From the NCBI RefSeq assembly GCF_046119375.1, contig NW_027362776.1, positions 6,758,001 to 6,822,000 on the forward strand: a stretch of 64,000 nt of DNA, read 5' to 3'. Both the position numbers and the translations under genes were made by a program. Under the pieces are notes generated by a model, which worked only from the letters and a program-made list of their open reading frames with translations, did not search any database and was not told the origin of the DNA. Source of the stretch: Phyllobates terribilis. Lineage: Eukaryota. Shown here piece by piece: positions 13,039 through 64,000 of this stretch (the first letter of the stretch is position 1; every line of letters begins with the position of its first letter).

Positions 13039-13193
13039 GTAAGTTATTTTAATCAGATTAATAAACATTCCATGCAAATAAATGGATTATCTCCAAAATC
13101 TTTATATGTAATTATGGTGTAAACCAAGGATTTGCCCAATTACAACTATTGTATGTCTTTGGATTTTCAGGAGTTATAGAGTACCACAATTTA

Positions 13194-13458
13194 CAGCCTC
13201 CTTCACATGTCCATGTTTGCAGTACTTTTCTTTCAGGGATGCCACACGAATAAGTTATAACCTATGCTGCTGTGCACATCTGTGTTTTTACACGGACTGT
13301 ATGTCCATCTAAACCACACAGACACATGTCCATTTTTTACCGGCATCACTGATGACAAGAGGGAATACAAGTCTCTTCATCCTTGTAAAACACGTACAGC
13401 ACACGGAGGGCATTCATGTACTGTACATGTTTAACATTGCAAAGTATAGGAGAAGCTT
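13194..13458. mobile_element. Left part of a Harbinger-like MITE running directly into the tandem array
   Basis: TTA|CAGCCTCCTTCACATGTCCATG resembles a GGC..TTCACAC TIR (compare 10237) with CpG-type decay. Internal GGATGCCACACG, TTTTACACGGAC and GGCATCACTGATGAC resemble the array monomer. Family identity is from pattern recall. Confidence 0.5.
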
Positions 13459-16400
13459 TGTCACACTGATCAGAACACTGATGGAATACTGCTGGCACAC
13501 TGATCACAACACTGCTGGCACACTGATCACAACACTGCTGGCACACTGATCACAACACTGCTGGCACACTGATCACAACACTGCTAGCACACTGATCACA
13601 ACACTGCTGGCACACTGATCACAACACTGCTGGCACACTGATCAGAACACTGCTGGCACATTGATCAGAACACTGCTGGCACATTGATCAGAACACTGCT
13701 GGCACATTGATCAGAACACTGCTGGCACACTGATCACAACACTGCTGGCACACTGATCACAACACTGCTGGCACACTGATCACAACACTGCTGGCACACT
13801 GATCACAACACTGCTGTCACACTGATCACAACACTGCTGTCACACTGATCACAACACTGCTGTCACACTGATCACAACACTGCTGTCACACTGATCACAA
13901 CACTGCTGGCACACTGATCACAACACTGCTGGCACACTGATCACAACACTGCTGGCACACTGATCACAACACTGCTAGCACATTGATCAGAACACTGCTG
14001 GCACACTGATCAGAACACTGCTGGCACACTGATCAGAACACTGCTGGCACACTGATCAGAACACTGATCAGAACATTGATGACACACTGATCAGAACACT
14101 ACTGGCACACTGATCAGAGCACTGCTAGCACACTGATCAGAACAATGCTGGCACACTGATCAGAATACTGCTGGCACACTGATCAGAATACTGCTGGCAC
14201 ACTGATCAGAATACTGCTGGCACACTGATCAGAACACTGATCAGAACATTGATGACACACTGATCAGAACACTACTGGCACACTGATCAGAACACTGATC
14301 AGAACATTGATGGCACACTGATCAGAACATTGATGGCACACTGATCCGAATACTGCTGGCACACTGATCCGAATACTGCTGGCACACTGATCCGAATACT
14401 GCTGGCACACTGATCCGAATACTGCTGGCACACTGATCAGAACACTGATCAGAACATACATGGCACACTAATCAGAACACTGCTGGCACACTGATCCGAA
14501 TACTGCTGGCACACTGATCAGAACACTGATCAGAACATAGATGGCACACTGATCAGAATACTGCTAGCACACTGATCAGAACACTGCTGGCACACTGATC
14601 AGAACACTGCTGGCACACTGATCAGAACACTGCTGGCACACTGATCAGAACATTGATGATACACTGATCAGAACACTGCTGGCACACTGATCAGAACACT
14701 GATCAGAACATAGATGGCACACTGATCCGAATACTGCTGGCACACTGATCCGAATACTGCTGGCACACTGATCAGAATACTGCTGGCACACTGATCAGAA
14801 CATAGATGGCACACTGATCAGAATACTGCTGGCACACTGATCAGAACATTGATGGCACACTGATCAGAACACTGCTGGCACACTGATCAGAATACTGCTG
14901 GCACACTGATCAGAATACTGCTGGCACACTGATCAGAACATACATGGCACACTGATCAGAACATTGATGGCACACTAATCAGAACACTGCTGGCACACTG
15001 ATCAGAATACTGCTGGCACACTGATCCGAATACTGCTGGCACACTGATCCGAATACTGCTGGCACACTGATCCGAATACTGCTGTCACACTGACCAGAAC
15101 ACTGCTGTCACACTGACCAGAACACTGCTGTCACACTGACCAGAACACTGCTGTCACACTGACCAGAACACTGCTGTCACACTGACCAGAACACTGCTGT
15201 CACACTGACCAGAACACTGCTGTCACACTGACCAGAACACTGCTGTCACACTGACCAGAATACTGCTGTCACACTGACCAGAATACTGCTGGCACACTGA
15301 TCCGAATACTGCTGGCACACTGATCCGAATACTGCTGGCACACTGATCCGAATACTGCTGGCACACTGATCCGAATACTGCTGGCACACTGATCAGAACA
15401 CTGATCAGAACATAGATGGCACACTAATCAGAACACTGCTGGCACACTGATCCGAATACTGCTGGCACACTGATCCGAATACTGCTGGCACACTGATCCG
15501 AATACTGCTGGCACACTGATCCGAATACTGCTGGCACACTGATCCGAATACTGCTGGCACACTGATCCGAATACTGCTGGCACACTGATCAGAACACTGA
15601 TCAGAACACTGCTGGCACACTGATCCGAATACTGCTGGCACACTGATCCGAATACTGCTGGCACACTGATCAGAATACTGCTGGCACACTGATCAGAACA
15701 CTGATCAGAACATAGATGGCACACTGATCAGAATACTGCTGGCACACTGATCAGAACATTGATGGCACACTGATCAGAACACTGCTGGCACACTGATCAG
15801 AATACTGCTGGCACACTGATCAGAACATTGCTGGCACACTGATCAGAACATACATGGCACACTGATCAGAATACTGCTGGCACACTGATCAGAACATTGA
15901 TGGCACACTAATCAGAACACTGCTGGCACACTGATCAGAATACTGCTGGCACACTGATCAGAACATTGATGATACACTGATCAGAACACTGCTGGCACAC
16001 TGATCAGCACACTGCTGGCACACTGATCAGAACACTGCTGGCACACTGATCAGAACACTGCTGGCACACTGATCAGAACACTGCTGGCACACTGATCAGA
16101 ACACTGCTGGCACACTGATGGCACACTGATCAGAACACTGCTGGCACACTGAACAGAATACTGCTGGCACACTGATCAAAACATTGATGGCACACTGATC
16201 AGAACATTGATGGCACACTGATCAGAACATTGATGGCACACTAATCAGAACACTGCTGGCACACTGATCAGAATACTGCTGGCACACTGATCAGAACATT
16301 GATGATACACTGATCAGAACACTGCTGGCACACTGATCAGAACACTGCTGGCACACTGATCAGAACACTGCTGGCACACTGATCAGAACACTGCTGGCAC

Positions 16401-60600: not shown

Positions 60601-60834
60601 CACTGATCAGAACACTGATGGCACACTTATCAGAACACTGATGGGACACTGATCAGAACACTGATGGCCCACTGATCAGAACACTGATCAGAACACTGAT
60701 GGTATGCTTCTGGCACACTTAACAGAACACTGATGGCACACTGATCAAAACACTGATCAGAACACTGCTGGGACACTGATCCGAACACTGATCAGAACAC
60801 TGCTGGCACACTGATCAAAACACTGATCAGAACA

Positions 60835-61760
60835 CTAATGTTACACTGCTGGCACACTGATCAGAACACTGATCAGAACACTGATGGCACACTGATCAGT
60901 AAACTGATGTCACACTGATCAGAACACTGATGGCACACTGATCAGAACACTGATGGCACACTGATCAGAACACTGATGGCACACTGATCAGAACACTGAT
61001 GGCACACTGATCAGATCACTGTTGGTACACTGCTGGCACACTGATCAGAACACTGATGGCACACTTATCAGAGCACTGATCAGAACACTGATGTCACACT
61101 GATCAGAACACTGATGGCACACTGATCAAAACACTGATCAGAACACTAATGTTACACTGCTGGCACACTGATCAGAACACTGATCAGAACACTGATGGCA
61201 CACTGATCAGTAAACTGATGTCACACTGATCAGAACACTGATGGCACACTGATCAGAACACTGATGGCACACTGATCAGAACACTGATGGCACACTGATC
61301 AGAACACTGATGGCACACTGATCAGATCACTGTTGGTACACTGCTGGCACACTGATCAGAACACTGATGGCACACTTATCAGAGCACTGATCAGAACACT
61401 GATGTCACACTGATCAGAACACTGATGGCACACTGATCAAAACACTGATCAGAACACTAATGTTACACTGCTGGCACACTGATCAGAACACTGATCAGAA
61501 CACTGATGGCACACTGATCAGTAAACTGATGTCACACTGATCAGAACACTGATGGCACACTGATCAGAACACTGATGGCACACTGATCAGAACACTGATG
61601 GCACACTGATCAGAACACTGATGGCACACTGATCAGATCACTGTTGGTACACTGCTGGCACACTGATCAGAACACTGATGGCACACTTATCAGAGCACTG
61701 ATCAGAACACTGATGTCACACTGATCAGAACACTGATGGCACACTGATCAGAACACTGAT
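60835..61760. repeat. 311-bp higher-order repeat, 3 copies
   Basis: CTAATGTTAC at 60835, 61146 and 61457; CAGTAAACTG and CAGATCACTGTTGG recur with the same period. Confidence 0.85.
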
Positions 61761-64000
61761 GGCACACTGATCAGAACATTGCTGGCACACTGATCAGAAC
61801 ATTGATGGCACACTGATCAGAACACTGATCAGAACACTGATCAGAACACTGATGGCACACTGATGGCACACTGATGGCACACTGATGGCACACTGATCAG
61901 AACACTGATCAGAACACTGCTGGGACACTGATCAGAACACTGATCAGAACACTGATCGGTACACTGCTGGCACACTGATCAGAACACTGCTGGCACACTG
62001 ATCAGAATACTGCTGGCACACTGATCAGAACACTGCTGGCACACTGATCAGAACACTGATGGCACACTGATCAGAACACTGATGGCACACTGATCAGAAC
62101 ACTGATCAGAACACTGATGGCACACTGATCAGAACACTGATGGCACACTGATCAGAACACTGATGGCACACTGATCAGAACACTGCTGGCACACTGATCA
62201 GAACACTGCTGGCACACTGATCAGAACATTGATGGCACACTGATCAGAACACTGATCAGAACACTGATCAGAACACTGATCAGAACACTGATCAGAACAC
62301 TGATCGGCACACTGATGGCACACTGATCAGAACACTGATCAGAACACTGTTCAGAACACTGATGGCACACTGATCGGAACACTGATGGCGCACTGATCAG
62401 AACACTGATGGTACGCTGCTGGCACACTGATCAGAACACTGATGGCACACTGATGGCACACTGATCAGAACACTGATGGCACACTGATCAGAACACTGCT
62501 GGCACACTGATCAGAACACTGCTGGCACACTGATCAGAACACTGCTGGCACACTGATCAGAACACTGATGGCACACTGATCAGAACACTGATGGCACACT
62601 GATCAGAACACTGATGGCACACTGATCAGAACACTGATGGCACACTGATCAGAACACTGATCAGAACACTGATCAGAACACTGATCAGAACACTGATCAG
62701 AACACTGATCAGAACACTGCTGGCACACTGATCAGAACACTGCTGGCACACTGATCAGAACACTGCTGGCACACTGATCAGAACACTGCTGGCACACTGA
62801 TCAGAACACTGATGGCACACTGATCAGAACACTGATGGCACACTGATCAGAACACTGCTGGCACACTGATCAGAACAGTGCTGGCACACTGATCAGAACA
62901 CTGCTGGCACACTGATCAGAACACTGCTGGCACACTGATCAGAACAGTGCTGGCACACTGATCAGAACAGTGCTGGCACACTGATCAGAACAGTGCTGGC
63001 ACACTGATCAGAACACTGCTGGGACACTGATCAGAACACTGATCAGAATACTGATGGCACACTGATCAGAACACTGATCAGAACACTGATGGCACACTGA
63101 TCAGAACACTGTTCAGAACACTGATGGCACACTGATCAGAGCACTGATGGCACACTGATCAGAACACTGATGGCACACTTATCAGAACACTGATGGCACA
63201 CTTATCAGAACACTGATGGGACACTGATCAGAACACTGATGGGACACTGATCAGAACACTGATGGGACACTGATCAGAACACTGATGGGACACTGATCAG
63301 AACACTGATGGGACACTGATCAGAACACTGATAGCCCACTGATCAGAACACTGATCAGAACACTGATGGCACACTGATCAGAACACTGATGGTATGCTTC
63401 TGGCACACTTAACAGAACACTGATGGCACACTGATCAAAACACTGATCAGAACACTGCTGGGACACTGATCCGAACACTGATCAGAACACTGCTGGCACA
63501 CTGATCAAAACACTGATCAGAACACTAATGTTACACTGCTGGCACACTGATCAGAACACTGATCAGAACACTGATGGCACACTGATCAGTACACTGATGG
63601 CACACTGATCAGAACACTGATGGCACACTGATCAGAACACTGATGGCACACTGATCAGAACACTGATGGCACACTGATCAGAACACTGATGGCACACTGA
63701 TCAGAACACTGATCAGAACACTGATGGCACACTGATCAGATCACTGTTGGTACACTGCTGGCACACTGATCAGAACACTGATGGCACACTTATCAGAGCA
63801 CTGATCAGAACACTGATGGCACACTGATCAGAACACTGATGGCACACTGATCAGAACACTGATCAGAACACTGATGGCACACTGATCAGAACATTGCTGG
63901 CACACTGATCTGAACATTGATGGCACACTGATCAGAACACTGATCAGAACACTGATCAGAACACTGATGGCACACTGATGGCACACTGATGGCACACTGA

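Follow-up and report, generated by a model that had tools for sequence, protein, structure and literature searches.

The closest known cases of a gene carrying a very large tandem repeat in an intron are the intronic VNTR of human CACNA1C and the satellite-filled introns of the Drosophila Y chromosome. The human repeat, TRACT, is a VNTR with a 30-bp unit that occupies 3 to 30+ kb of intron 3 of CACNA1C, and population, disease-association, and expression data exist for it (PMC13131567; 10.1101/311795). In Drosophila, the Y-linked fertility genes kl-3 and kl-5 possess gigantic introns filled with satellite DNA (PMC6508621; PMC11207136). In poison-frog genomes, introns have grown by transposable elements (PMC11152451; PMC6278860), and a text search of one of these papers found satellites and tandem repeats nowhere mentioned (PMC11152451).

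We analyzed a window of 64,000 nucleotides from Phyllobates terribilis (contig NW_027362776.1, positions 6,758,001 to 6,822,000), which is numbered below from its first letter. Our main reading, to which we assign a probability of about 0.78, is that a tandem array filling most of this window is a locally expanded minisatellite in an intron of at least 51 kb, belonging to a uridine phosphorylase gene (probably UPP1) that is intact, expressed, and single copy; the donor at 13039 is used, the intron is removed, and the array is tolerated and probably functionless. Compared to the known cases, the frog array is ordinary though extreme. First, it resembles TRACT in its short unit (23 versus 30 nt), its length of tens of kilobases, its probable location in an intron of an expressed vertebrate gene, its block mosaic of unit variants, its lineage specificity, and its probable removal with the intron by splicing. 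The two differ in size (at least 50.5 kb versus 3 to 30+ kb) and in that the population, disease-association, and expression data concern TRACT; an origin in a transposon fragment is suggested for the frog array and not for TRACT. Second, as in kl-3 and kl-5, simple tandem repeats would form the bulk of an intron whose transcription and removal the gene needs in order to work. However, the kl-3 and kl-5 introns are megabase-sized, lie in Y heterochromatin, belong to testis-specific genes, and rely on dedicated RNA-binding proteins, whereas the frog gene is metabolic, its intron is established as 51 kb or more, and there is no sign of a special expression programme. Third, the array shares with the intron growth described in poison frogs the same clade, very large genomes, genes enlarged by intronic repeats, and a transposon fragment in its flank, but the published work blames dispersed transposons, while in the frog window a single tandem array makes up at least 99% of the intron that is visible.

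Tandem Repeats Finder reported a single forward-strand array at 13463–64000 with a period of 23 (also 46 and 69), 88% matches, and scores of 41,500 to 60,083. The array runs off the end of the window, and its 50,538 nt are a lower bound. It comprises about 2,190 to 2,200 uninterrupted copies with no N, and it is a head-to-tail minisatellite or VNTR of the class with units of 10–100 nt. A sequence-only reading of this DNA had placed some 50.5 kb of repeat behind the donor; that length stood, while the first 424 nt of the intron (13039–13462) proved to be intron start and transposon fragment rather than array. Each 23-nt unit consists of the 12-mer CACTGATCAGAA followed by the 11-mer CACTG(C/A)TGGCA, and occasional doubling of the 12-mer yields 35-nt units. 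Successive cores are mostly 23 nt apart; spacings of 12, 34/35, and 46 nt are common as well. The array contains runs of identical variant units; in its three longest stretches free of the core CTGAT (230–391 nt), a GACCAG version of the unit is repeated in blocks; and the dominant 11-mer changes near 33.4 kb. On a larger scale, a block of about 7.87 kb is duplicated in tandem on the forward strand at 44000–60196 (44000–52400 against 51868–60196), with 94.1% of letters identical when the lag is 7,868, versus about 86% in other registers; long exact words come back at lags of 7,773–7,899. The variant blocks and the 7.87-kb duplication suggest that the array grew by slippage and unequal exchange. 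In keeping with such growth, the unit contains the 8-nt palindrome CTGATCAG, and the single strand folds better than its shuffled versions (z −2.67). Since the duplicated blocks differ by 6% and no N is present, a simple duplication made during assembly is argued against.

Two coding exons precede the array on the forward strand. By sequence comparison, they encode the N-terminal region of a uridine phosphorylase of the PNP_UDP_1 superfamily (vertebrate UPP1/UPP2). The first, exon 2 at 12509–12629, starts one base into a split codon and its peptide ends in FSDVK; it matches residues 18–53 of UPP1 and 8–43 of UPP2 among PDB entries, immediately preceding those matched by the second. The second, exon 3 at 12880–13038, is the last phosphorylase exon visible in the window and encodes a stop-free peptide of 53 residues ending in KVGPVLAIS, which aligns end to end with human UPP2 (residues 44–96) and bovine UPP1 (54–106), both at E 6e-18. 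With each exon aligned separately, both peptides are colinear with UPP1 (3ku4, 3eue) and UPP2 (3p0e, 2xrf) over consecutive residues (E 6e-18 and 3e-12). In both exons the reading frame is unbroken, conserved residues are kept, and the splice sites are canonical. A Pfam scan of the single exons returned no match, as can be expected for pieces of 40–53 residues.

The gene is probably the UPP1 paralogue rather than UPP2, to judge from these peptides. Among named proteins, fish UPP1 comes closest to exon 3 (72–74%), exon 2 gains a slightly better score against bovine UPP1 than against UPP2, and identity is only 60–70% to the three UPP2 proteins that represented frogs in the comparison. An exhaustive protein search with exon 3 (53 residues) yielded fragments that were mostly genomic read-through, and no full-length protein of Phyllobates terribilis; a word search with bird UPP2 listed UPP2 proteins only, and one with exon 3 itself found only genomic fragments of two related frogs (P0009 and P0303). 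The collection searched seems to lack proteins of this species. Neither exon 1 nor a promoter was located within the window. The only CpG-rich stretch in it (10000–11600) was considered for that role and rejected, being an extremely high-copy repeat.

Contigs from RNA-like runs of the same species, from two studies (X9 and X11; their RNA nature is presumed), cover both exons. In both, the joint 12627 to 12878 ("cut +2," with GT..AG ends) removes a short forward-strand intron of 250 nt at 12630–12879, inside which depth is zero. A 1,571-nt contig of X11 (record 15) places its letters 559–678 on 12508–12627 (+2) and its letters 679–839 on 12878–13038; a 1,917-nt contig of X9 (record 30) is placed on the two exons in the same way. 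Depth in these contigs is 199–285 on the exons and 0 on 12700–12869 and 13040–13294. The GTAAGT donor that the sequence-only reading had noted is present at 13039–13044. Both contigs stop matching the genome exactly at 13038, the point from which that reading had proposed to seek an RNA junction, and their continuations (732 letters in X11, 1,042 in X9) are unlike the adjacent intron. The size of these remainders suits the rest of a reading frame of about 310 codons plus a 3′ UTR. Taken as RNA, these contigs show that the gene is transcribed and that the donor at 13039 is used. In each of two individuals, the exons prove to be single copy: the only DNA contigs on them are one at 11890–13225 with a depth of 12.8 (X1, record 7) and one from a different sample and study at 12197–13055 with a depth of 13.2 (X5, record 22). 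The mRNA therefore derives from this locus. Given spliced contigs that run past 13038 and single-copy exons, the array most likely lies in the intron of a working gene.

The next phosphorylase exon had been reported missing after 13038, and this was confirmed across 13039–64000. The peptides HGMG (from the phosphate-binding exon), GMGIP, PSISI, and MLHEL occur in none of the six frames of this interval, and tblastn with four uridine phosphorylases containing the next exon found nothing past 13095. An exon hidden inside the array was likewise rejected, as open reading frames there reach at most 99 residues and all encode repeat peptides, and the motif search and tblastn were empty. The lack of a downstream exon within 51 kb would suit a gene broken by the array or the adjoining transposon, whose transcripts end in a substitute 3′ exon and encode an inactive product of about the first 100 residues, and past 13038 it is the length of the mRNA contigs that is known. 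We regard such a truncation as very unlikely. With exons in single copy, it would leave the frog without this paralogue. Both exons retain frames, conserved residues, and splice sites. mRNA contig depth is high, and the length after exon 3 is that expected for the remaining coding sequence and UTR. Furthermore, the sole exon difference seen between individuals, a T>C change at 12993 in X9 that the X5 DNA shares, is synonymous. The broken copy offered by the sequence-only reading is thus unlikely, and its other suggestion, a gene transcribed and spliced through or around the array, has gained indirect support from the joined contigs; the position of the array within the intron is inferred from the assembly and the mRNA together. 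Passage through the array might carry the costs which that reading proposed, in elongation time, heterochromatin, or length-dependent expression. In our main reading, the remaining exons would lie past the array on the same DNA molecule, the polymerase would read through it, and the array-bearing intron would be removed from the transcript.

Between exon 3 and the array lie 424 nt of conserved intron start followed by a transposon fragment. The donor and the conserved intron start occupy 13039–13170 on the forward strand; a contig from a related frog (L001) is 83% identical over 12867–13170 and divergent thereafter. Because this contig and a second one from a relative (L002) are shorter than 1 kb and have in common with the window only exon 3 and at most about 130 nt, they are uninformative about the array. 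A MITE-like fragment of a dispersed repeat follows at approximately 13191–13461, as judged from contig depth and loose ends, and an Rfam scan of 11900–16000 matched no family. Depth rises from 13 to 300–400 over 13125–13379 and to about 46,000–50,000 over 13380–13464, the last 45 nt or so of the fragment (13417–13461) being very high in copy; loose contig ends lie "behind" 13460/13461 and "before" 13417. The array starts at the point where other copies of the MITE-like repeat continue with different sequence. The array may have arisen next to or inside a transposon fragment and grown by replication slippage and unequal exchange.

This junction also bears on whether a real array was wrongly joined to the gene, or inflated in length, so that the true intron would be far shorter. 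The join sits just after the very high-copy 45-nt repeat at 13417–13461, uniqueness of the short-read contigs supporting the flank ends at about 13343, no listed unique contig spans from there to the array, and the junction at 13462 is known from the assembly alone; RNA-run depth on the array is very low, too. However, no N or gap lies near the join, and a repeat would have to be far longer than 45–80 nt to mislead a long-read assembly. Unit variants within the array are richly diverse and non-periodic in their arrangement, duplicates inside it share 94% and not 100% identity, and the DNA runs of two individuals contain thousands of copies of the unit. Such an artefact is very unlikely.

The sense strand of the array may explain why it would be tolerated, as it offers the splicing and 3′-end machinery almost no false signals. 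In its 50.5 kb there are 434 GT dinucleotides (8.6 per kb, where the flank has about 60), no GTRAG donor core, no pyrimidine tract followed by AG as in an acceptor, and neither AATAAA nor ATTAAA as a poly(A) signal. Selection for a GT-free sense strand was considered and rejected, as this is a single locus and, estimated from the background rate, roughly one 23-mer in four would be GT-free by chance. Since the gene is still expressed and its transcript correctly spliced, the array is in all likelihood harmless filler of a very long intron.

Over the first 56 nt of the array, contig depth is only 8–13 in the RNA runs versus 20,000–60,000 in the DNA runs, which suggests that steady-state array RNA is scarce; since contig depths are no measure of RNA level, this speaks neither for nor against read-through. 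Summed DNA depth on the first units is roughly 1,600 and 4,600 times single copy in the two individuals (about three-fold apart), contig depths being a poor gauge of copy number. This is about 6–17 times the depth expected from the window's own copies, in which roughly 270 positions resemble these units, and a satellite private to this locus was rejected on these grounds. The array might extend over hundreds of kilobases, be read through in somatic tissues, and vary in length between individuals so as to set uridine phosphorylase output; we consider this very unlikely. If true, it would place beside the Drosophila satellite introns an autosomal counterpart from a vertebrate.

A functional role for the array, whether in delaying transcription, in forming heterochromatin or a boundary, or in tuning expression through its variable length, is very unlikely, although roles of this kind have been put forward for certain intronic VNTRs. 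The three-fold depth difference between individuals could reflect length polymorphism, and in human CACNA1C, long alleles of the VNTR are reported to accompany reduced expression in some tissues (PMC13131567). These points are set against contig depths that reflect copy number poorly, the lack of conservation (only about 130 nt at the start of the intron recur in relatives), a unit that matches no Rfam family, and a GT-free strand of the kind expected by chance. A CTCF-like motif in the unit was also dismissed, its G-rich half being missing when compared by eye with the consensus. On present evidence, the array is a neutral passenger, most likely one that would have no function of its own.

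The locus offers a clean and extreme instance of intron growth by tandem-repeat expansion and not by dispersed transposons, in a clade where transposons have so far been given as the cause of genome inflation. It is a natural test of the load of simple repeat that an ordinary vertebrate gene tolerates with its mRNA still correctly spliced, and it can show whether repeat length affects expression.

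Two coding exons of a uridine phosphorylase gene lie on the + strand, at 12509-12629 (a 40-residue translation ending in FSDVK) and at 12880-13038 (exon 3, 53 residues ending in KVGPVLAIS). Exon 3 is followed directly by the GTAAGT donor at 13039 that the sequence-only reading had pointed out. The exon peptides were compared one at a time, with no joined model. In comparisons with solved structures, they successively matched residues 8-43 and 44-96 of UPP2 (3p0e) and residues 18-53 and 54-106 of bovine UPP1 (3ku4), with E values of 3e-12 to 6e-18. Since the two peptides fall on consecutive residues of the same proteins, the exon borders are the conserved ones. 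Peptide similarity suggested that UPP1 is the likelier, but not a settled, assignment between these vertebrate paralogues, as identity to the UPP2 of three other frogs was only 60-70% and the nearest named relatives of exon 3 were fish UPP1. The next phosphorylase exon had been reported as missing downstream, and indeed no HGMG-type peptide (the phosphate-binding motif expected there) was present in any frame of 13039-64000, and tblastn with four phosphorylases, including their later exons, gave no match past 13095 in the window. The reading that 50.5 kb of the 51 kb beyond the donor is tandem repeat was confirmed, at 50,538 nt of array; the 424 nt from the donor up to its start are not array.

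Four public runs of this species supplied contigs for comparison with 11000-13520 of the window. Two of the runs, X9 and X11, are small and come from separate studies; of the query words they contain just the fifth to quarter that is exonic, and both therefore behave as transcriptomes, their RNA origin being a guess. A single long contig in each of these RNA-like runs (X9, 1,917 nt; X11, 1,571 nt) joined 12508-12627 straight to 12878-13038, omitting a stretch with GT..AG ends. The match of both contigs to the genome stopped exactly at 13038, the junction at which the sequence-only reading had suggested looking, and they continued for a further 1,042 nt (X9) and 732 nt (X11). The exons had a contig depth of 199-285; neither the short intron nor 13040-13294 had any. 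That the gene is truncated and has acquired substitute 3' exons is highly improbable; the length past exon 3 is roughly what the remaining ~215 codons and a 3' UTR would require.

In each of two DNA runs, X1 and X5, which differ in sample and study, one contig covered the exons, at a depth (12.8 and 13.2) equal to that of the unique flank, leaving no second copy as a possible source of the mRNA. The only exon difference seen was 12993 T>C, a synonymous change at the third position of a Thr codon. It was present in the X9 contig and in X5 DNA and absent from X1 and X11, and therefore represents an allele segregating in the species. Together, the transcript contigs and the single-copy exons show that splicing uses the donor at 13039 and that mature spliced RNA from this locus reaches well past exon 3. 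We favor, with a probability of about 0.78, a neutral minisatellite expansion in a uridine phosphorylase gene that is intact, expressed and single-copy, within an intron measuring 51 kb or more.

At their 5' side, the two long RNA-like contigs (X9 record 30 and X11 record 15) carried 558-594 nt upstream of exon 12509, none of it on 11000-12507, which places the promoter and at least one initial exon further upstream, possibly beyond the window's edge. A separate 151-nt X9 contig (depth 5) covered 12377-12518, that is, the upstream intron's final 132 nt and the exon start, and its first 9 letters had no match to the window; it could represent intron retention or a longer, alternative version of the exon.

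The array itself runs uninterrupted and without N from 13463 to the window end at 64000. Tandem Repeats Finder reported a period of 23, about 2,190 copies and 88% matches. The unit consists of the 12-mer CACTGATCAGAA (1,634 exact copies) and then an 11-mer, either CACTGCTGGCA (518 exact copies) or CACTGATGGCA (507 exact copies), with occasional doubled 12-mers; the three longest CTGAT-free stretches (230-391 nt) consist of GACCAG-variant blocks of the unit. The CTGCTGGCA form of the 11-mer dominates the proximal 20 kb, which is more heterogeneous, and the CTGATGGCA form and doubled 12-mers dominate from ~33.4 kb of the window onward. Identical variant units adjoin each other in runs, and long exact words recur at lags of ~311, 427, 1,665-1,734, 6,235 and 7,773-7,899 nt. 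The segments 44000-52400 and 51868-60196 are 94.1% identical, compared to about 86% in any other register, and 44000-60196 thus holds a tandem duplication of 7.87 kb whose copies have since diverged. The 12-mer includes the 8-nt palindrome CTGATCAG, and a 138-nt sample of the array, folded as single-stranded DNA, was more stable than its own shuffles (z -2.67), which is compatible with slipped-strand intermediates. These features are the usual marks of slippage and unequal exchange. They would be hard to obtain through assembly error, and it is unlikely that the array was wrongly joined here or inflated in length.

How the gene tolerates such an array may be considered from its sense strand, which contains 434 GT (8.6 per kb, compared to about 60 per kb in the flank). 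This strand lacks GTRAG donor cores, AATAAA and ATTAAA, and has no AG preceded by a pyrimidine tract; the antisense strand holds 8,262 GT and 34 GTRAG. Thus, in the expected orientation of transcription there is almost nothing in the array for splicing and polyadenylation factors to recognize. A functional role of the array is very unlikely. Roughly one in four random 23-mers at the background GT frequency is free of GT, and the scarcity of GT therefore explains tolerance and does not demonstrate selection. Given vertebrate elongation rates, transcribing 50 kb of extra sequence would take some tens of minutes.

Summed contig depth over 13465-13520 was 8-13 in the RNA-like runs, where the exons had 199-285, and 20,000-60,000 in the DNA runs. 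Very little array RNA seems to be present at steady state, but contig depths do not measure RNA level, and the low value is not counted against read-through. Over the first 56 nt of the array, summed depth reached about 1,600 (X1) and 4,600 (X5) times single copy. At a threshold of 90% similarity to these first units, the array in the window has just about 270 matching positions, so more of the repeat must exist past the window or at other loci. The X1-X5 contrast may reflect length variation between individuals.

The array adjoins a fragment of a dispersed, MITE-like transposon at 13191-13461. In the DNA runs, depth climbs from 13 to 300-400 across 13125-13379 and to about 46,000-50,000 across 13380-13464, and contig breaks are numerous before 13417 and behind 13460/13461. 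These observations identify the fragment as part of a dispersed, partly very high-copy element, whose last ~45 nt occur in thousands of genomic copies. Past 13460/13461, other copies run into A/T-rich sequence and not into array. The array starts at the exact point where homology to them ends, and therefore begins at a break in, or the end of, the element. In a related frog, a 958-nt genomic contig, traced via a read-through ORF 91% identical to exon 3, matched the window at 83% across 12867-13170 and diverged beyond; a contig of a second relative had the exon alone in common with the window.

Among the nearest known cases is the intronic 30-bp VNTR of human CACNA1C, described as spanning 3-30+ kb, with lower expression from long alleles in some tissues (PMC13131567). 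Drosophila Y genes, with megabase introns filled with satellite (PMC6508621, PMC11207136), are also among them. Poison-frog genome papers ascribe long introns to transposons (PMC11152451, PMC6278860), and a text search of the first returned no mention of satellites.

Elsewhere in the window, 150 N at 187-336 (an assembly gap or masked sequence) lie within the retrotransposon-rich left end. The CpG-rich stretch at 10000-11930, which includes a 369-nt unit in two tandem copies (10234-10965), was considered as a promoter CpG island and ruled out as one, being a very high-copy repeat. With summed contig depths of 10^5 to 10^6 in the DNA runs and abundance in the RNA-like runs too, it is one of the genome's commonest repeats.
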